This document shows, piece after piece, positions 2,725-53,886 of a stretch of DNA of 64,000 nucleotides. Under the pieces are notes generated by a model. That model was not told the DNA's origin. It ran no database searches and saw only the letters and a program-made list of their open reading frames with translations. The DNA lies in sequence record MT612988.1; one strand, 5' to 3'. The position numbers were made by a program, and so were the translations under genes. Each line of letters opens with the position of its first letter. The first letter of the stretch is position 1.

Positions 2725-2964
2725 TTATTTATATGTCTGGTTATCAACCCATTGCTTGAGTTCTGGAAGATGACCTATGTATGTATCACCATGCATAGCA
2801 AGAGGCACGCGAATGTTGCGCACCCCACCAAGTTTCTCATGCAATTTATCGATATCAGATTGAGACTGTAACTCTATTACAGTGTACGGGACGTTTTTGA
2901 ACTTACAGAGGGAAATTGCGTGACGACAGCCGTCACAGTTGGGAATTGTGTATATCGTTATCAT
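2725..2964 (-). CDS. Glutaredoxin / NrdH-like
   Basis: TIYTIPNCDGC (CxxC), VP motif, YIGH; 79 aa. Confidence 0.85.
   Translation of the reverse strand: MITIYTIPNCDGCRHAISLCKFKNVPYTVIELQSQSDIDKLHEKLGGVRNIRVPLAMHGDTYIGHLPELKQWVDNQTYK
2726..2733 (-). promoter_or_regulatory. Late promoter TATAAATA upstream of gp24-gp55
   Basis: Exact T4 late consensus overlapping the glutaredoxin stop codon. Confidence 0.7.
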
Positions 2965-2981: not shown

Positions 2982-3011
2982 TATTATACGTCTGCCAAGG
3001 TGGTTATTAAA
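2982..3011 (-). promoter_or_regulatory. GTTTAA-18-TATAAT promoter for the glutaredoxin-gp24-gp55 unit
   Basis: Minus strand reads gtttaa taaccaccttggcagacg tataat, then GAGGTGAG SD and ATG 2964. Confidence 0.6.
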
Positions 3012-3020
3012 CAAATCTTA

Positions 3021-3081
3021 CTAATACTTCTAATATTACTAAAAGCACTAATACTACTAAGATGAGACGGAATTTTTCCGC
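3021..3081. repeat. 61-bp dispersed element, copy 1: five 9-bp CTAA-iterons plus CGGAA-ttt-TTCCG hairpin
   Basis: 60/61 identical to the reverse complement of 45710-45770. Units: ctaatactt, ctaatatta, ctaaaagca, ctaatacta, ctaagatga. Confidence 0.95.
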
Positions 3082-3088
3082 TCAAACC

Positions 3089-3110
3089 AAAAAAAGCCCC
3101 TTTCGGGGCT
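3089..3110 (-). terminator. Rho-independent terminator
   Basis: agcccc-gaaa-ggggct followed by a T-run, after the SprT-like gene. Confidence 0.85.
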
Positions 3111-4064: not shown

Positions 4065-4568
4065 TTATTCACTAATTGACTTCACTTTTTCGATAATTTC
4101 AACGATTTCTTTCGCTGAACGATTCGAAAATATGATTGTCGATTTTTTGCGTCGCTGTACTTCTTTATGCTTTGCTGGGTTTAGATGTCCAAGTTCGCGA
4201 TCAAGTTCCTTATTTGATAATACACTAGAACGAATCATTACGCGATGACTATCAGGCAGTCCAGTAGTCACGTATACATTTAGACCGTGCTCTTCAGAGT
4301 CCATACCAGGCTGAGATTCTCGAATCTCCCAAAAATCTGAAGACTCGCTTTGTAGTTCTGCAAGTAGTTCTTCAGCAGTTGCTTTAGGCTGTGCTTCAGC
4401 GCGTACTTTACGTGCTTTCTTCGTCTTAGCAGATTTCATTGCTTTCTGACGAAGGTCTGTTAAATAATGACGACGACCTTTCTCATCAACAACTTGAAAA
4501 CCGTTTGAGTCTACTGTCATGTTGAAGTAAGCAGCAAGTTGTTCGTTAGTCAGTGATTGTACATTCAT
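4065..4568 (-). CDS. Hypothetical early protein, 167 aa
   Basis: ORF with GAGAGA RBS and an early promoter. Confidence 0.75.
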   Translation of the reverse strand: MNVQSLTNEQLAAYFNMTVDSNGFQVVDEKGRRHYLTDLRQKAMKSAKTKKARKVRAEAQPKATAEELLAELQSESSDFWEIRESQPGMDSEEHGLNVYVTTGLPDSHRVMIRSSVLSNKELDRELGHLNPAKHKEVQRRKKSTIIFSNRSAKEIVEIIEKVKSISE

Positions 4569-6358: not shown

Positions 6359-6384
6359 AAAAAGGGAGCAAATTGCTCCCTTTT
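6359..6384. terminator. Bidirectional terminator
   Basis: aaaaa-gggagc-aaatt-gctccc-tttt between convergent genes; identical 26-mer at 47107-47132. Confidence 0.9.
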
Positions 6385-9991: not shown

Positions 9992-10027
9992 ATGATAATG
10001 AAAAGGGCTGCAAATTGCAACCCTTTT
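9992..10027 (-). promoter_or_regulatory. Early promoter TTGCAA-17-TATCAT with its -35 inside a terminator stem-loop
   Basis: aaaaggg-ttgcaatttgcag-ccctttt; -10 at 9992-9997. Confidence 0.65.
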
Positions 10028-17609: not shown

Positions 17610-17939
17610 TTAACCCTCAAATGATTCGATAAGACGAAAGTTTTCGTAGTCTGCTTCTGAAGCAGCACGCCAATGTTTAAGTGAAACTTTACCCGCTGCT
17701 TTGATTTTGTCAATAAGCTGTGCTGACTCATAACCTGGCCATGCACATTTCTTTTCAACTGTAGTGCTCCACAGTTTGCGACTTTCACAATATGAACCTT
17801 TCGAATCCATGAAAAGCACTTCATGCAGCATGATTGTACCATCTTCAAGGCGCATTGCTACTTTTTGGTGTTCTGCACGCATAGAATAAACGACTTTGAT
17901 TTCAGCAAATTTGATGTCGAATTTAGTTTGGTCAGTCAT
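17610..17939 (-). CDS. Hypothetical early protein
   Basis: AAGAGAGAACATTATG leader and early promoter. Confidence 0.75.
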   Translation of the reverse strand: MTDQTKFDIKFAEIKVVYSMRAEHQKVAMRLEDGTIMLHEVLFMDSKGSYCESRKLWSTTVEKKCAWPGYESAQLIDKIKAAGKVSLKHWRAASEADYENFRLIESFEG

Positions 17940-17983
17940 AATGTTCTCTCTTTGTTTTAGGTCAACATCGTGTTGATGTAGCT

Positions 17984-37008: not shown

Positions 37009-37649
37009 CTTTGATTTTTTATTTGAATAAACATTTCTTTAGCAAGAACTTCGTCGATTTTCAGCAACTTATCGTATGCTAAAGCTCGTGTCTTGAACTC
37101 GTGCCAGAAGATATCGTCTCCGTAATCTTTGTCGATTACAGGTACGAAGTTCAATAATCTATTCAGAATTACGAACGTCTCAATTGAGATAGTATTTCGT
37201 AACACGAGTTGCATTATAACGGGATGCCCTTCGCCTCTAAACAAATCTTTGAATTTTTTATTCTCTCTATTTATAAGAGTAAAAATCGAAAGTAGTTCAT
37301 TTTTGTAGTGTTGACTGTAAATTTCCATAAATCCCGTATGTTTCAACCAGAATTCATGAGCGTCAGCACCTGCAATCTCATAAGAAATCGCATTTGGGTT
37401 CGCTGCTAAGTTACTAACAAGCAACTGATAGCAATCATTCAATGTTAGCCGTTTGGCTAGCCGTTCAAAAAACACCTTATCTGAACGCTTCTCGAACGCA
37501 GATCTAGGTGTTTTCATTCCGAGTTTATACTTGGAGATGTCGTACTTTCCGCCCATATGCGCCTTTACAGCACAATAAACACGAAATACGCTATACCCAT
37601 TGACCCAAGTCCGAGGCAGAACCAAATCGACTTCTAATAGTCTTTTCAT
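36996..37649 (-). CDS. 59: Helicase loader gp59
   Basis: YCAVKAHMGGKYDISKY, FEKRSDKVFF, TISIETFVIL. Confidence 0.92.
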   Translation of the reverse strand: MKRLLEVDLVLPRTWVNGYSVFRVYCAVKAHMGGKYDISKYKLGMKTPRSAFEKRSDKVFFERLAKRLTLNDCYQLLVSNLAANPNAISYEIAGADAHEFWLKHTGFMEIYSQHYKNELLSIFTLINRENKKFKDLFRGEGHPVIMQLVLRNTISIETFVILNRLLNFVPVIDKDYGDDIFWHEFKTRALAYDKLLKIDEVLAKEMFIQIKNQSKIQ

Positions 37650-39251: not shown

Positions 39252-42200
39252 ATGTCAGAATTCCGCAGAGCATTTCGTGCGTCAGGTCTTGATGCAAGTG
39301 GTCAGAATGTCATTAACGTAGCAGACCCACGAGCAAATGAATTGTTCGACGGTATTAACCAAGGCTACTTTATTGAAGAGAACACTGTTCAAGAGTATGA
39401 CCCAACACGAGATCACTATAAAGTAGACTTTATCGTTGAGTTCAATCAACGTCTATACAAAAACATTACCGAAATCAATGCACCTGAACCTTTTGACTCG
39501 CAGAAGTGGCAGAAAATGCGTACCGACCCTGAATGGGAAGATACTGATTCATCGGTAGGCGCAAACGTCGGTGACTTCTTGTTGTTAACAGCAAGCTCGG
39601 CAATCACTATTACACTGCCTGAAACACCATTAACAGGTGACACAGTTACAATCAAAGACGGTAAAGGCGTTCTTACAACTTACCCTTGTACGATTGCAGC
39701 AGCGGGCGGCTTGACGATTCAACATTACGGCATTGACGGTTCAATTGAGTCTAAACCGAGTATTTCATTCAATACCCCTAACAGCACTATATTCTTAGTG
39801 TACAACGGTATTGCATGGACATATCAGATCAATCAAGAGTTATACAATACGTATATTGACGACAGTCACCCAACTCAACAGGGTGGGTACTTATCAACTG
39901 GTGGTTATTTCACTAACGTTGGCGAGACAGTCACATATGACGGTTCAGTTAAGAAAATTGCAATTTCTGTACCACTGAACCCGAACGTGGGCGATACAAT
40001 TCATCTTAAAGATGTTGCGTATCTTGAGAATCAAACGTCGATTCAAATCGGTGTGAACCCGACTGCTACGGGTCAGGTTATTCAAGACCCTATTTCAGGC
40101 GAACGTAGTTCTGTTATCAGTCTTGATACTATCGGCGGCGCTGATATCACATTTATCGATGATAACGGTACTGGCGTATGGGTAATCACAATCGCGAACA
40201 ACCCGCATTTATGGAACTATGTCGGTGATTCAAGCGCGGTTGAATTGAAGCCTCGTTCTCGTTACGCTATCGAAATCGCAGATGCTGTTCCTGCAATGAC
40301 GATCACACTACCAGAAAAACCAGCAGATGGTGACTGGATTGAGATCTCACACAACAAAACAGCTCATAAGAAAGTAACGATTCAAGTTCACCCGAATTTC
40401 GGTGATGATGACCCAGGTCACGGCCCCGATGAATACAAAGTATTCTTGGACTTTGAAACATATCGTTATCAAAAATACCGTCATTACGTTGATTTCGTTC
40501 CATTCTTCGTTGAATCATTCGAAATTAGTGATTATGACAGCGGTTATTCACTAGTTCTATACTACGACGCGAGTCGTAAAGTATGGTCGTTCGGTAACAT
40601 CGCGACTCGTATCGATATCGCTGATGAACTATACCGTAAACGCCCGGGTATCGTGCCATTAGCTGACCCAACGGAAGCTCTAGCACACGGGATTGAATAT
40701 GCGCACCCTGAAGATGCAGCAGACCCTTGGGCTGATCAAAACCCACTGAAAGACCACGTAATCACGGTAGAGACGCTTGACGCTCGTCGTGCAGGTGAAC
40801 AGCAAGTTGGTATGGCTCGTGTTGCTACTCTTGGAACTGATGAAGCTCTTGAAGAATCGCGTTCTGGTACGTTTGTTCGTTACCCAGATACAAACTTCAG
40901 ACATGATCTGTTCATAACACCACGTAGTTTGAATGCGCGTACAGCAACTGAAACACGTCGCGGTGTAGTTGAAATCGCAACTCAAAACGAGACGCGAAGC
41001 ACAACTAACGATGTTCAAGTTCTAACACCGATGAAATTCCACGCTGCACAAGCTGAAGAAGATCTAACAGGTGTTGCAAAACTAGTCGAAGCGTCGAACA
41101 ACATCAATGCTGGTGGTATTGTTACATCAACAGCGAATATGCGTTCAGACCGTTCAGTAAATGGTCTTGACAATACAGTATATGATAAAACTGATCATCT
41201 GCGTATCGTAACGCCAAAAATGCTTGATGAGTATCGTGCTACAGAGAATCAACCTGGTACATTATGGGTTGCTAAGAGCAGTGAACTCCGCATCAACGAC
41301 TCAACAGTTGATAACGCGATCATCACGCCTAAGAAATTAGCAGCGTGGAAAGCAAGCTCAACGGTTCGTGGTATTGCTCGTTCTGCCACACAGTCTGAAG
41401 CAAATGCAACAACAGGAACTGGTGAATCGTGGACAACAGTCTTCATCACACCAGAAACGTTGAATAGCAGAACAGCAACTGAATCACGTCGTGGTGTTGC
41501 TGAAATCGCAACTCAAACTGAAGTTGACTCAGGGACAGACGATACTCGTATTGTTTCACCACTTAAACTGAAGACATGGCTTGATCGTGACCATTTCGTG
41601 ACGGCAGGAACAGATGGTCTATCGCATACTGGTACAGTGTGGGGCGACGTTACATTCAGCATCGCGTCAGCGACTGAAACACAACGTGGTACACTACAAG
41701 TTGCGACTCAAGTAGAAGCGAATGCTCAAACTGGTGCGCTTGATGATGTAATCATCACACCACAGAAGTTAAATGCGCGTCGTGCTACAGAAACGCAAAC
41801 CGGTATCGTGCGTCTTGCGACTCAAGCTGAAGTCGAAGCAGCGACAGCTAGTAATGAAATTGTTATTACTCCGAGTGATTTGCTACACTGGACTCGTTAC
41901 TCTGACAGCTCACGTGCAAATGAAAGTCGTTATGGTAACGTACAAATCGCAACACCAGCAGAAACATTTGTTGGTAACAGTACAGACGGTTCAACACAAG
42001 CGTATACGTCGTACTTGCGTGTTCCGTATGCAGTTTCACCTTACGGTCTGCATTATGCATTGCGCAACTACTTACCGCTAAACGCTAAAGCTGATGACTC
42101 AGAATTACTAGATGGCTTGAACAGTACACAATTTGCACGTCGTGACATCGACCAAACAATCAATGGCACGTATACGTTTAGTGGCGAATTCGTGCAAACG

Positions 42201-42967: not shown

Positions 42968-45661
42968 ATGTACGAAAGACTTAAACGTGACGGCGATTGG
43001 CTATTAATCTTTCGCCATGATTCAACAGGAGGTGTGTTTTTCACCTCCGATGCTGAAGCACGCAGCGTCGGGACAGATCCCGACGTTGAACAAAAATTCA
43101 GTGCGTTGAACTCACTTGAGGAATTTCGCCGTGAAGACGGAAAATTCCAATTCAAGCTTCATTACCCTGAATTAGATGTAACAAACATCTGGAAGCAAAG
43201 TAGTAACTTTGCAGCTATTGATGTAGGTCAATATCTTACAAACGGTAACTTAGCGGGTGGGGAATACGTCACTGAACAAAATGCAAAAATCGGCTCTTGG
43301 GTTATTGTTGAGAAAGAAAACCCAGGGTCATCAAAATACGTTGTAGAACAACCAACTGCGGCACTCGAAGATCAATTGCGATTTCAAGTGCCACAATCGC
43401 GTTTAAAACCAAACAAAACATACACATTGTCATGTTGGGTTGGGTATGAAATAGACGCTGATCACGACACAGCAGCTATATTTCACGCTCGTTGGTATGA
43501 CGGTTCCAATAATGATTATACATTAGGCGAACATACTGCGGGTGACGTGTTCGAATCAGCAGGAAACGAAATAATAGTTGACGGGATTCTTTGGAAACGT
43601 CACTATGCTCGTTTCACAACGCCTAGTACTCTTTCATCAAGTAGCATGTACTGGTATTGTTGTTATACAACTGATACAGGTAAATTACCAACAGGTAAGC
43701 GTTGGCTTACAAACTTCATGATCACAGACTCGCAAATCGTCAAAAACTATACTGGCGATTACGACGCTACAACTCGCGGCGTTAGAGGCTATGAACCGAT
43801 TTACATCGAAAGCACTGCAAATGATTGGGGTGGAATAGAATATAGTGTTTCAGCCAGTACGTTAGCAGACGGTTCAGTTGACATATCAAATTGGTATTGG
43901 GCTATCGGTGCGAAACGTTCTTGGCCAGACGGGGCTACTACATTCCCGGGACCGGGTATAAACGTCAATCAAGCTGAATTGTGGGTATATGCTCCTGTTG
44001 GTTCTAGAATCGGTGAATATGAAGTGTCAGCTAGGCATATCAGAGATTTTTCAAACAATAATATCAGACTGTTAGCAACAGGTGTCGCGAACGGAAGTTC
44101 AAACCTAGCATCATGTTATATAAACGATGTTAGCGTATTTACACCCGAAGCTAAACAACAATATCAAGTTCGTTTGATTATATTCAACGACGATATGACA
44201 GTCAAAACTAATAGAAAATATCTTCTGAGTAGTTCAACAGAACGTAGCAACTTCATCAACGGTCTGAACGGGTTGACAACAGAGCCGTTTGTTATTTTAT
44301 CAAATGGGTCAATGTACGCAGATTCTGCGGTAGATGCTGCAATTCAACAGTATCACCCGATTGAGTATCGCGGTAGCTCTTACTTCAGTCAATACAGTTA
44401 TAGTTACTGTGCATTCGGGACAGGTCAATTAGGTATTGTATATGATCGTTGTATGTTCGACCATGAATCTGACGGTGACAGTGTTGTTGATACTGCATTC
44501 GAAGATAAAGCAGGGATTGGTTCAAACGGGTACGGAATTCCTTTACTCGAAACAATGACTGTTCCTACTGATAAACGTTATCTTCTTTCAGATTATGGTG
44601 TAATCGACGGACAGTACTTGATTTACAAAGCTCGTGCATGTATTGATCGAAATTCAGCAATCGCGAATGCAGACAAAATGGCGAATCTTCGATTCTACAA
44701 CGTAGTTGGCGATGAAGTAGGCAGACAGAATATTCATTTTTACAGTGCAGAGAAAAAAGAAACTCAAGAATTTTTCGTACAAGTACCAACAGGTGCAGTT
44801 AAATTTGGAGTTTGGTCTGACTTACAACCAGAGTACTTTGATTACGTCATATTGACTAAAGGCGGAATGTCAACCCCGAGTGGTATACCTCATATGATTT
44901 CGAACATAAACGGTATCGCTGCTCAAGAGATTGTCAATTCACCGATTACAGGTAACGTAGTTGATGACGATAGCTGGTGGCGAGCATATAACGCAGATTC
45001 AAACTTGTATGCAGGTATTAATATGCCAGTACAAGAAATTGACAACGTTCAATGGGGTAATTATGTACTTTCAGGCGGTGAAAAGTGTTTCACACGTACA
45101 GCAGGCTCATCATCTCCAATTGAAATGCAAGAAGTATCAATCGATCCATCTCGACCGTATTTCCTATCATTGTGGGTTAATGCTATCGACAAACAAAATA
45201 GCTTCTTATACTTCAGTGTACGAGTCAAAAATTCAACAGGTGATTATAGAACTCTGAGATTGTCAGACGGTAGCAGAACATCTACATATATCAATATTGA
45301 TAGAGTGTATGGGTTCCCTGCATCAAATAATCAGTGGATATTGCTACAAGGGTATATTTTACCACACGATTGGACTGATGCACAACATCAAGCGTTTGCT
45401 GATAAGTTTAACAACTATTTCGGTGTTATAAACCCTGAAGATGATCCAAGTTACCAAACGTCAAAGGGTGTTGGTTACTATACAACAGATGCAGACAAGT
45501 CATTTAGATGGAATAGTGATGATGATAAGTTGATACTTCGATATAAAGACGAAACAGCCGTTGAGAATCAAGTAATGTGGGCTTTCCCAATTGTTACTGA
45601 AGTCAATGTTGCTAGTTCGTTTGAAGACAACTTCACTGCAATCGACTTTGCAATGAAATAA
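42968..45661 (+). CDS. 35: gp35-position tail fiber hinge protein, 897 aa, multi-domain
   Basis: Follows gp34; fibrinogen-like segments, beta-sandwich inserts. Confidence 0.65.
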   Translation: MYERLKRDGDWLLIFRHDSTGGVFFTSDAEARSVGTDPDVEQKFSALNSLEEFRREDGKFQFKLHYPELDVTNIWKQSSNFAAIDVGQYLTNGNLAGGEYVTEQNAKIGSWVIVEKENPGSSKYVVEQPTAALEDQLRFQVPQSRLKPNKTYTLSCWVGYEIDADHDTAAIFHARWYDGSNNDYTLGEHTAGDVFESAGNEIIVDGILWKRHYARFTTPSTLSSSSMYWYCCYTTDTGKLPTGKRWLTNFMITDSQIVKNYTGDYDATTRGVRGYEPIYIESTANDWGGIEYSVSASTLADGSVDISNWYWAIGAKRSWPDGATTFPGPGINVNQAELWVYAPVGSRIGEYEVSARHIRDFSNNNIRLLATGVANGSSNLASCYINDVSVFTPEAKQQYQVRLIIFNDDMTVKTNRKYLLSSSTERSNFINGLNGLTTEPFVILSNGSMYADSAVDAAIQQYHPIEYRGSSYFSQYSYSYCAFGTGQLGIVYDRCMFDHESDGDSVVDTAFEDKAGIGSNGYGIPLLETMTVPTDKRYLLSDYGVIDGQYLIYKARACIDRNSAIANADKMANLRFYNVVGDEVGRQNIHFYSAEKKETQEFFVQVPTGAVKFGVWSDLQPEYFDYVILTKGGMSTPSGIPHMISNINGIAAQEIVNSPITGNVVDDDSWWRAYNADSNLYAGINMPVQEIDNVQWGNYVLSGGEKCFTRTAGSSSPIEMQEVSIDPSRPYFLSLWVNAIDKQNSFLYFSVRVKNSTGDYRTLRLSDGSRTSTYINIDRVYGFPASNNQWILLQGYILPHDWTDAQHQAFADKFNNYFGVINPEDDPSYQTSKGVGYYTTDADKSFRWNSDDDKLILRYKDETAVENQVMWAFPIVTEVNVASSFEDNFTAIDFAMK

Positions 45662-45684
45662 AAGAGCCCTTCGGGGCTTTTTTT
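45661..45684 (+). terminator. Terminator after gp35
   Basis: agccc-ttcg-gggct followed by a T-run. Confidence 0.9.
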
Positions 45685-45709
45685 ATACGCGAAGCGAAAA
45701 CGGTAAGAG

Positions 45710-45779
45710 GCGGAAAAATTCCGTCTCATCTTAGTAGTATTAGTGCTTTTAGTGATATTAGAAGTATTAGAGGGATTAG
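45710..45779. repeat. Iteron element, copy 2 (inverted), upstream of uvsY
   Basis: 45710-45770 matches copy 1 at 60/61; a sixth in-phase unit (ctaatccct on the minus strand) lies at 45771-45779. Confidence 0.95.
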
Positions 45780-45780
45780 T

Positions 45781-45810
45781 GTTTAAGCAACCAATGATGA
45801 AATGTATACT
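45781..45810 (+). promoter_or_regulatory. GTTTAA-18-TATACT promoter for uvsY
   Basis: gtttaa gcaaccaatgatgaaatg tatact; GAGG SD. Confidence 0.65.
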
Positions 45811-45828: not shown

Positions 45829-46242
45829 ATGAAGCTACAAGATTTAAAAATTGAATATCACGAAGACGTGAAAATTGACACAACTGCTTTAGAAACAGCA
45901 GCTATTCGAATTCCCGTTCTTCATGCGAAGTGGCTTGCATACCGAGCCGATGCAAGACAACTACTTATCAAAGCTGAAATGAAAATGGAAGCTGTGAGAA
46001 AAGACCGCTGGCTCTTTTATAGCGGCAAACATGACGATGAAGTTTGTGATTTCATCGTAGAAAAGAGTGAAATGAAATATGCTCTTGCGGGTGATGAATA
46101 TCTTCAACGTGCAATTGCTACTTTTCAACACATGAAAGATGTGTTATCATTCATCGAAGAAGCTTTGAAAGGCATTAGTCAAATGGGCTTCACAATCAAA
46201 CACATTATTGACAACAGAAAAATTGAGAGTGGTATAGTATGA
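45829..46242 (+). CDS. uvsY: Recombination mediator UvsY
   Basis: IPVLHAKWL, YSGK, KSEMK...LAGD, MGFTIKHII. Confidence 0.92.
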   Translation: MKLQDLKIEYHEDVKIDTTALETAAIRIPVLHAKWLAYRADARQLLIKAEMKMEAVRKDRWLFYSGKHDDEVCDFIVEKSEMKYALAGDEYLQRAIATFQHMKDVLSFIEEALKGISQMGFTIKHIIDNRKIESGIV

Positions 46243-47104: not shown

Positions 47105-47133
47105 AAAAAAAGGGAGCAAATTGCTCCCTTTTT
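47105..47133. terminator. Bidirectional terminator
   Basis: Same 26-mer as 6359-6384; lies between convergent genes. Confidence 0.9.
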
Positions 47134-52659: not shown

Positions 52660-52701
52660 CTCTATCAACGAAACGAATCGTCCATTACAAGAGAGAACAT
52701 T

Positions 52702-53886
52702 ATGACTTCACTAAACAAATTCGAAAACACTTACACAATCAAATCAATCTACATGAGCGAGTTTGAAGCGCGTATTGCATCTACTAACAAGATTGCAAAA
52801 CGTCTCGGTGTTGCTGAAATTACATTTGAGTTCGGTGAAGTGTACTCAAAAGTCATTATTATCAATCACCAAAAGCATCGTGAATACTACGTTGATGTTA
52901 CTATTCGCGGTGAATACCCGTCAACTAAAGGTTGGTCTTTCTTGACTCAACTTGACCACGCGACAAATCTTATTCGTTCAAACAACGAAACAAATCACCG
53001 TCATCTTCTAGGCGACACAACATGCGATCACTGTAACTCTAATCGTCAACGCAATGTAACTTACGTCATTCAGAATGAAGAGACTAAAGAAGAAATGCGC
53101 GTCGGTGGTTCATGCTTGAAATACTACTTGCCGACTAAATCTATCGACTCACTAGCGACGTTCTACACTGCAATCGCTGATTTCGGTGATGAAGAGTCTT
53201 GGGGTGGTGGTTCTCGTAAAATTTCATATAACGCGCTTCAGATTCTTGCTTGGGCTGCTATGTATGTTGAACACAAAGGTTGTTATCACGGTGGCGGTGT
53301 GACTCGTCAATGGGTTCTTGACATGATTAATGCAGGTACACCTGCACTTCGTACCGAACGCGATGCAATGTTAGATGAATATGATTACGACAATTGTGAA
53401 GAGCAAGCAAAAGAGATTTTAGAATGGGTTGCAACTCAAGAAGCGACTAACGATTTCATGCATAACGTCATCGCGTCTTGTTCTGCACCATTCATCGAGT
53501 ACAAACAAACTGGTTACATTGCAGCGGCTATCTTAGCTTTCAACAAAGCAAAAGAGCGCGAGATTCTAGCTAAACGCGAAGCTGAACGTAAAGCAGATTT
53601 GCCAGAATCTGAGTACGTCGGTACTATCAAAAAACGCGAGAACTTTAATGTCACTCTTGAAGCGGTTATCGTTTCTGAAGGCTACTACGGTGACACGTTC
53701 ATTCACAAGTTTCGCGATGAACAAAACAATCTAATCGTGTGGTTTGGTTCAAAGCGTCTACGTGATAACGACGGCGAAGCGATTGAGAAAGGCGTTTCAG
53801 TAACTGTAAAAGCGACTGTAAAAGCGCACGAAGAGTTTCGCGACGAAAAACAGACAATCGTACAGCGTGTAGCGTTCGTCGCTTAG
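52702..53886 (+). CDS. Early protein with Cys motif (CDHC...SCL) and C-terminal OB-fold-like domain
   Basis: CDHCNSNRQRN; YVGTIKKR...YGDTFIHKF...VKATVKAH..FRDEKQT. Confidence 0.6.
   Translation: MTSLNKFENTYTIKSIYMSEFEARIASTNKIAKRLGVAEITFEFGEVYSKVIIINHQKHREYYVDVTIRGEYPSTKGWSFLTQLDHATNLIRSNNETNHRHLLGDTTCDHCNSNRQRNVTYVIQNEETKEEMRVGGSCLKYYLPTKSIDSLATFYTAIADFGDEESWGGGSRKISYNALQILAWAAMYVEHKGCYHGGGVTRQWVLDMINAGTPALRTERDAMLDEYDYDNCEEQAKEILEWVATQEATNDFMHNVIASCSAPFIEYKQTGYIAAAILAFNKAKEREILAKREAERKADLPESEYVGTIKKRENFNVTLEAVIVSEGYYGDTFIHKFRDEQNNLIVWFGSKRLRDNDGEAIEKGVSVTVKATVKAHEEFRDEKQTIVQRVAFVA

Follow-up and report, generated by a model that had tools for sequence, protein, structure and literature searches.

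A conserved hairpin and TTAG-array element at six gene junctions of KVP40-like vibriophages

Two almost identical non-coding sequences, inverted relative to each other and located upstream of a glutaredoxin gene and of uvsY, raise the question of what these phages use them for. The window, i.e. the whole stretch of 64,000 nucleotides that was analysed, is 100% identical to part of the genome of Vibrio phage vB_ValM_R10Z (MT612988.1, 247,167 bp), a KVP40-like phage of the genus Schizotequatrovirus, family Straboviridae. Positions in the R10Z record equal window positions plus 62,000. A preliminary description had presented the two sequences as twin elements and proposed either replication origins or activator sites of a promoter class. 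The inverted pair was recovered by a repeat search, with arms at 3011-3081 and 45710-45780 (71 nt, 93% complementary). The 61-bp cores were identical at 60 positions, the lone mismatch being T/C in the spacer of unit 3. Nine-base CTAA units numbered five in copy 1 and six in copy 2, as had been claimed. The CGGAA-AAA-TTCCG hairpin was found in both copies, and the layout of terminator, element, GTTTAA-18-TATA(A/C)T promoter and gene had been given correctly for both. At least four TTAG units at 9-nt spacing were matched five times in the window by overlapping hits, all within these two copies, here termed c2 and c3; the number expected from 100 shuffles of the window was 0.00. As to the extent of the element, the described 61-bp core held, but the GCGAAGC motif (45689-45695 in copy 2) lies outside the coordinates first assigned to it. 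The features of both loci are given in the order of local transcription.

3085-3110, minus strand: intrinsic terminator of the SprT-like gene, stem at 3095-3110 followed by a T run, immediately 5' of c2
3064-3083, minus strand: c2 hairpin or palindrome, GAGCGGAA-AAA-TTCCGTCTC
3061-3063, minus strand: invariant ATC linker of c2
3007-3060, minus strand: c2 TTAG array, seen as CTAA on the plus strand at 3021, 3030, 3039, 3048 and 3057
3007-3015, minus strand: degenerate sixth unit of c2, TTTG for TTAG, overlapping the -35 region
2983-3012, minus strand: sigma-70-like promoter after c2, TTAATA-16-TATAAT, or GTTTAA-18-TATAAT as first described
2725-2964, minus strand: NrdH-like glutaredoxin gene downstream of c2, followed by gp24 and gp55
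42968-45661, plus strand: gp35-like tail-fibre hinge gene upstream of c3
45664-45685, plus strand: intrinsic terminator after the gp35-like gene
45688-45696, plus strand: optional 5' motif of c3, CGCGAAGCG, core GCGAAGC
45707-45727, plus strand: c3 hairpin or palindrome, GAGGCGGAA-AAA-TTCCGTCTC, nine pairs including one G.T
45728-45784, plus strand: ATC linker and six TTAG-N5 units of c3, the sixth unit overlapping GTTTAA
45731, 45740, 45749, 45758, 45767 and 45776, plus strand: starts of TTAG in c3
45781-45810, plus strand: uvsY promoter-like sequence, GTTTAA-18-TATACT
45829-46242, plus strand: uvsY recombination mediator gene downstream of c3

The idea of a twin pair did not survive a look at the full R10Z genome, which holds six copies, and the two window loci were not specially paired among them. 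Their positions in R10Z are as follows.

c1, 19.7 kb: upstream of a gene without known function and dam
c2, 65.0 kb: copy 1 of the window, at the junction of the SprT-like gene and the NrdH-like glutaredoxin gene
c3, 107.7 kb: copy 2 of the window, at the junction of the gp35-like hinge gene and uvsY
c4, 135.6 kb: upstream of wac
c5, 161.5 kb: at the junction of gene 3 and gene 1
c6, 211.5 kb: at the junction of two genes without known function in the NAMPT region

KVP40 and nt-1 also carried six copies each, at the identical six gene junctions, although nt-1 belongs to another genus (Mylasvirus). The nt-1 copies are found at 51.3, 104.2, 130.5, 157.7, 200.9 and 245.2 kb. Five copies were present in F86, the most distant relative found, which was without c6. 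With an 86-nt query, element-sized matches were obtained in 51 Vibrio phage records, at six places in nearly all complete genomes, and additional copies occurred on three metagenome contigs. The proposal had been made dependent on conservation in relatives, and the element was kept in every KVP40-like relative examined. A pattern anchored on CATCTTAGTAG proved specific, unlike the bare TTAG-N5 x5 array. It was absent from Vibrio genomes and gave a single match, in a Ruminococcus MAG, among 185,579 species genomes, while its matches in IMG/VR were KVP40, VH7D and single contigs. The scan of IMG/VR with the bare array was unspecific, with more than 120 stretches listed, many of them on giant-virus (GVMAG) contigs and often several side by side. 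Contig L161 was rejected as a family member, its TTAG run being partial, irregularly spaced and without a hairpin on an unrelated AT-rich contig. At the gene 3/gene 1 junction of Aeromonas phage phiAS5, which is 7 nt long, the element was missing, and, among the few IMG/VR relatives found through UvsY, the distant ones showed neither an intergenic gap nor an array upstream of uvsY. The element is therefore specific to the KVP40-like clade. A host-derived or mobile repeat of the REP or MITE type was dismissed because no copies were present in Vibrio genomes and the positions were fixed across genera. No description was found in the searchable full text, which does not extend to the KVP40 genome paper, either for the element sequence or for repeats and origins of KVP40. 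The element is apparently an undescribed non-coding module of KVP40-like vibriophages.

The anatomy was drawn from 26 aligned copies, read in the local direction of transcription. The parts followed each other in the order optional GCGAAGC motif, hairpin or palindrome, TCATC and TTAG units. The optional motif, GAGCGAAGCG, preceded the hairpin by 10-17 nt. Most phages had it at c3-c6, and c2 was without it. In R10Z, GCGAAGC was present at c1, c3, c5 and c6, whereas c4 had an altered version and c2 had none. The last codons of the upstream gene contain the motif at c6 and at R10Z c1. The CGCGAAGCG sequence was predicted to form a mini-hairpin both as RNA and as DNA. The main hairpin was centred on a nearly invariant AAAAATT and comprised six core pairs, or up to nine in the commonest variant. 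Two of its pairs showed compensatory GC-to-CG changes (four sequences each), and there were further G.U variants that pair on the sense strand only. Pairing was possible in 84% of the hairpin cells, compared with 35-53% when the partners were slid. The hairpin was broken in two of the 26 copies and was rebuilt in another way in F86 c5. TCATC between hairpin and array was invariant throughout. The unit was TTAG-W-R-R-W-A with a strict 9-nt period in 26/26 copies, of which 20 held six units and six held five. TTAG was invariant in 150/150 units; the spacers varied, with C almost never there. Judged from this pattern, invariant TTAG and varying spacers look like the signature of repeated recognition sites.

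The core identity between R10Z, nt-1 and F86 averaged 81%, compared with 78-80% for the flanking genes and 68-71% for the non-coding flanks. The element core is thus as conserved as coding DNA. Within a genome, paralogous copies were 0.81-0.86 identical. Between F86 and the other phages, orthologous copies (0.77-0.80) were no closer than non-orthologous ones (0.78-0.79). The copies evolve in concert within a genome, which would fit one factor acting in trans combined with gene conversion. R10Z c1 was 99% identical to R10Z c5 and did not resemble KVP40 c1 in this way. Through the conversion tract at R10Z c1, the upstream gene acquired the GCGAAGC segment at its 3' end and with it a changed C-terminus. 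This 3' end, in R10Z gene _39 (L002:19772-19800), reads KKSEAK* compared with KKEQ* in KVP40 (L162); the codons AGC-GAA-GCG (S-E-A) also terminate the gene upstream of c6. Since copies evolve in concert and c1 was converted by c5-type sequence, the 60/61 identity in the window reflects lineage-specific homogenisation by recent gene conversion in R10Z.

Ectopic gene conversion of this kind, evident at R10Z c1, would also be expected of a recombination passenger, i.e. an array within a PeSL-like terminator-promoter cassette that was spread and homogenised by the recombination system of the phage and has no dedicated function. T4-like phages, nt-1 and KVP40 included, carry stem-loop-promoter cassettes that are linked to gene shuffling (PMC4122927). 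PeSL combine an A3-4G3-loop-C3T3-4 stem-loop with TTGYVH-N17-TAWWAT and are numerous, mainly in hyperplastic regions (PMC4122927). The element resembles PeSL and PmSL as a dispersed, recombining intergenic stem-loop with a sigma-70-like promoter, and the flanks of c2-c5 match. When the PeSL order was compared locus by locus, these flanks fitted, c6 was promoterless, and at c1 the element came before the stem-loop. Unlike in PeSL, hairpin and TTAG array form a separate insert between terminator and promoter, in six fixed copies. Copy number and the six positions were stable across genera, four of the six sites are surrounded by core genes, away from hyperplastic regions, and the published PeSL description is without this array (PMC4122927). 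Because TTAG was invariant in all units while the spacers were free, selection must have acted on specific bases and not mere homogenisation. A passenger without function is accordingly considered very unlikely. The element is a non-coding cis module that is restricted to this clade and subject to purifying selection; each genome has it six times, at fixed gene junctions.

Current annotations leave the element loci blank or cover them with probably spurious small ORFs. Small ORFs were annotated across the element in nt-1 (104096-104236, ORF204) and F86 (195891-196028, VPHF86_0317), and in D48x/K5xx phages a 'hypothetical protein' was annotated beneath the c2 match. A protein-coding micro-ORF, including the open L-V-V frame, was rejected, as the frame differed among copies and there was no common start codon. 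Open frames shifted even between orthologues (R10Z c5 and nt-1 c5). The small ORFs over the element are therefore probably false gene calls.

The transcriptional setting was uniform at four loci. At c2-c5 of all four phages, a stop codon, a strong intrinsic terminator, the element, a sigma-70-like promoter and a gene followed each other. At c1 the element was located directly after the stop codon, ahead of a stem-loop with a TTGACA promoter. Neither terminator nor promoter was present at c6, where the last two units form the Shine-Dalgarno (SD) sequence and the start codon (TTAGGAGTATTAGAGTG in R10Z), with a similar role in KVP40, nt-1 and two metagenome contigs. Since these units supply SD and start codon, the array is certainly part of the mRNA at c6. 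The gene that starts within c6 varied, being _294 in R10Z (L004:34750-35433) and ORF126 in nt-1 (L031:1366-2094). Its N-terminus resembled a lipoprotein signal peptide in R10Z and KVP40 and was unrelated in nt-1; the upstream gene and the element were conserved although the downstream gene differed. The TTAG strand was the coding strand of the downstream gene in 6/6 copies (two-sided P about 0.03).

This arrangement could indicate transcriptional control at the DNA level, in which a factor that coats the array would activate, repress or insulate the promoter next to it. In one variant the coated array would be a polar roadblock against terminator read-through, like the stoperators of mycobacteriophages. 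Five of the six copies were directly upstream of a sigma-70-like promoter, the orientation relative to transcription was fixed, and four copies came immediately after terminators. The sixth unit of c2 and c3 overlapped the -35 region in all four phages. However, the last unit and the -35 box were 20-31 nt apart at c1, ~15 nt at c4 and 22-29 nt at c5, and ~0 nt at c2 and c3. The distance thus ranged from 0 to ~30 nt between loci and differed even among the orthologues of a single locus, with 22-29 nt among those of c5. The earlier proposal of an activator site for the GTTTAA-18-TATAAT class fared poorly in the same respect. TGTTTAR-N16-18-TAnnnT occurred 23 times in the R10Z genome and adjoined an array only four times, leaving 19/23 such promoters without one, at variable distances where one was present and with c6 promoterless. 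As only 4/23 adjoin an array, the array is a separate module and not part of this promoter class. Moreover, the downstream genes (nrdH-24-55, uvsY, wac, gene 1 and two unknowns) do not form an obvious regulon, and the regular spacing of 26-55 kb would be left unexplained. Control of the adjacent promoter, by activation or otherwise, is therefore regarded as unlikely. L5 and Bxb1 stoperators are single 13-bp sites, present 20-30 or more times per genome and bound by the lysogeny repressor. They share with the element a dispersed intergenic location and an orientation that follows transcription, but the element is composite, about 100 bp long and present six times, in phages that are lytic.

Examples of TGTTTAR-N16-18-TAnnnT were located in the window at 37243, 38234 and 39238 (all minus strand) and at L003:36073 and L004:36224 (both plus strand). 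Possibly this class is an early or middle promoter type peculiar to the clade. The element-linked promoters (GTTTAA/TTTAAx-17/18-TATAAT) showed no TGCTT box at -30, and a T4-style MotA box was not seen at them. Several other signals were compared with the element and set aside. For an antisense sRNA ending at a bidirectional terminator, an antisense terminator-like run was found at c3 only, and no conserved antisense promoter was recognised by eye. A Rho-loading (rut) site on the antisense RNA, which is unstructured and G-poor, nevertheless fitted poorly because the C of CTAA mostly follows A and not a pyrimidine. The GCCCAAAAATTGGGC variant fitted a Fis consensus, but its outer G/C was not conserved among copies. 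Sites for the host factors IHF, ToxR and DnaA, compared in the same way, were likewise discarded.

The constant orientation also brings an RNA-level element into consideration, which could be a processing site, a stability element or a translational operator, maybe read by a UUAG-binding protein. In the modelled fold, a GC-rich hairpin would be followed by a long G.U-rich hairpin in which units 1-3 pair against units 6-4; at c6 such a structure would mask SD and start codon. Two observations are as expected of an RNA signal: the TTAG strand coincides in every case with the coding strand of the gene that follows, and the c6 array is transcribed. The sense array folded with a mean MFE of -9.4 kcal/mol and a mean z of -2.3 (26 copies), while the antisense was essentially structureless. 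In the proposed 23-pair helix, 83% of the cells paired, compared with 34-58% with partners slid, and the first hairpin added its two compensated pairs and its sense-only G.U variants. The sense RNA folds into the long G.U hairpin because TTAG and the consensus unit are wobble-palindromic. However, pairing in the long helix followed column composition without real covariation. RNAalifold kept the first hairpin only. No Rfam family matched: with Rfam 15 there was no match in the window at gathering thresholds, and the sub-threshold matches near copy 1 did not involve the array. Little sense transcript is expected at four of the six copies, which are located downstream of a strong terminator and upstream of the next promoter. 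A conserved reading frame or start codon was lacking, and the even genomic spacing is unexpected of a local RNA signal. The TA-TTAG-TA pseudo-symmetry would suit dimeric DNA-binding proteins equally. An RNA role is consequently held to be unlikely, with about one-fifth of the weight, and about two-thirds was given to a protein-binding array at the DNA level. The element most likely binds a protein.

The arrangement of the copies in the genome was more regular than expected. In R10Z the gaps between copies were 45, 43, 28, 26, 50 and 55 kb, and those in nt-1 were nearly the same. Compared with six random points on a circle, this corresponded to P values of 0.006-0.007 for the minimum gap, 0.002-0.005 for the maximum gap and 0.004 for the CV, in a post hoc test on six points. 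As the genomes of R10Z and nt-1 are collinear, the spacing counts as one observation. With separations of 26-55 kb, the copies are distributed more evenly than expected by chance (post hoc P about 0.005). A role at the scale of the genome is a better fit than local promoter control, which is weakened by the variable geometry, the promoterless c6, the regular spacing and the many promoters of this class that have no array.

The element probably acts mainly as DNA, as a docking array for about six protomers, three dimers or a hexamer. Each TTAG unit would be bound by one protomer of a sequence-specific factor, probably encoded by the phage, and the neighbouring palindrome would start or bound the protein complex. 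The six complexes could then serve a genome-wide DNA process as entry points; the most plausible such process would be origin-type initiation or the loading of a helicase or replisome early in infection. The AT-rich array would provide an easily opened stretch, and the co-orientation with transcription would reflect forks that set out in the transcribed direction, as they do at T4 ori(uvsY). That the six complexes act as origin-type or loading sites is the leading, still tentative, guess by analogy. It was ranked first because of the multi-origin precedent of T4 and the location of c3 exactly at the uvsY promoter. Doubtful, in turn, is the more specific idea that all six are polar origin modules for one dedicated oligomeric initiator or loader, forming a shared replicator.

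The origin proposal of the preliminary description concerns a feature that is real and conserved, and it is plausible. In its favour are the six dispersed, evenly spaced copies, conserved in every relative, with one at the uvsY promoter. The tandem direct repeats typical of iteron origins were present with a strict 9-nt period in 26/26 copies. As to an unwinding element, the array itself was AT-rich and one of its strands was free of structure in the folding analysis, and none separate from the array was defined. Against the proposal, the T4 origins share no motif, the array is upstream of the promoters and not downstream, and a period of 9 bp does not match the turn of the helix. For some small DNA-binding proteins, short tandem boxes out of phase with the helix are nothing unusual, so the period is no argument against duplex binding. 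The fixed orientation, the wobble-dependent self-complementarity restricted to the sense strand and the SD and start codon at c6 would be explained more directly by an RNA role. Copy c6 at least is dispensable, since F86 lost it, and two of the 26 copies have a broken hairpin. Pfam scans covered the flanking genes and a few candidate DNA or RNA binders, a minority of the ~250 unknown ORFs, and detected nothing relevant to a binding protein or initiator. The domains met were DUF2283, DUF2828, SprT, glutaredoxin, UvsW.1, DsbA, Alc and SLOG, none of which suggests a binder.

The regular spacing would also agree with another genome-scale role, such as chromosome organisation or condensation, a terminase or topoisomerase site, or a polar nick or sliding-clamp loading site for T4-type late transcription. 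The orientation is tied to the transcribed strand, and transcribed-strand orientation matters for T4 clamp-loading enhancers. In addition, the combination of a constant tetramer and AT-rich spacers is reminiscent of the arrays that small ribbon-helix-helix (RHH) proteins bind at centromeres and operators. On the other hand, no ParB-, RHH- or nickase-like gene was found among the few proteins scanned, and no need for specific sites is known for T4-type packaging or late transcription. Such roles are judged rather improbable. In an exotic variant, the six sites would be polar nick or sliding-clamp entry points that feed late transcription.

For the preferred reading as origin-type or loading sites, T4 is the nearest precedent. 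T4 has at least five dispersed origins (oriA, C, E, F and G), one of them at the uvsY promoter (PMC3016281). At oriE, evenly spaced short direct repeats of 12 nt are conserved in relatives and have no established binder (PMC3016281). The T4 origins share no common motif, and the unwinding element of oriF and oriG is downstream of the promoter (PMC3016281). The element is similar to the T4 layout in its dispersal and its site at the uvsY promoter. It differs from the 12-nt repeats of oriE, which belong to one origin only, by a 9-nt period and a hairpin at six loci. Direct equivalents of the oriE iterons were rejected because the gene 5/repE (repEA-repEB) position is not among the six loci and the period is 9 nt. 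The R-loop origins (oriF/uvsY and oriG/34), which have a middle-mode (MotA-box) promoter, were rejected as well, as the array is upstream of the promoter, the promoter has no TGCTT box at -30 and only the uvsY position matches. In SPP1 (oriL/oriR) and in lambda and plasmid iteron origins, the iterons are 17-22 bp long and helix-phased, and the initiator gene is known and usually adjacent. SPP1 oriL/oriR, two copies in one genome that are bound by a single initiator, are like the element in having identical repeat clusters tens of kb apart with AT-rich DNA near, whereas the element has a period of 9 bp and six copies. ParG/parH, the omega heptads and the MetJ met-boxes have invariant boxes of 4-8 bp with AT-rich spacers that are coated cooperatively by small dimers. 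These ribbon-helix-helix box arrays share the head-to-tail order at a non-helical period, but they are located at one or few operators or centromeres of plasmids or operons, unlike the six-locus element.

The choice of replication starts in T4-type phages is only partly understood, and the role of the oriE repeats has been undefined for decades (PMC3016281). One compact, invariant module at six even and conserved positions offers a direct experimental handle. Natural variants are at hand in F86 without one copy and in copies with five units or a broken hairpin. If the idea of a shared replicator is true, these would be the first T4-type phages whose origins all share a recognisable sequence and a trans-acting factor. 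Should the element act at the RNA level, it would represent a regulatory RNA motif that is new for phages and based on UUAG wobble-palindromes.

Other repeats were observed in the window. An identical 26-nt palindromic stem-loop, AAAAAGGGAGCAAATTGCTCCCTTTT, occurred at 6359-6384 and 47107-47132, 40.7 kb apart, with a third, diverged copy at 10001-10026. It fits the A3-4G3-loop-C3T3-4 stem-loop of the PeSL cassettes of nt-1 and KVP40 (PMC4122927). Three direct copies of a 76-nt segment were present at 40911-41826, 64-80% identical and with spacings of 531 and 309 nt. They are located upstream of the gp35-like gene, probably within a gp34-like tail-fibre gene, and have the look of an internal coding repeat. 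A 41-nt inverted repeat (17912-17952 and 52689-52729, 80% complementary) was found in an SD/start context (AAGAGAGAACATTATGAC) and may represent the shared translation-initiation region of two genes. KVP40-type phages are reported not to replace cytosine. Yet a clear homologue of Alc is encoded in the clade, in nt-1 as ORF326 (L033:49344-49898; PF17527, E = 5e-54). The orthologue in VH7D and ValKK3 is annotated 'inhibitor of host transcription', and the counterpart in the window lies between 2000 and 5000, probably as the ORF at 4065-4568.
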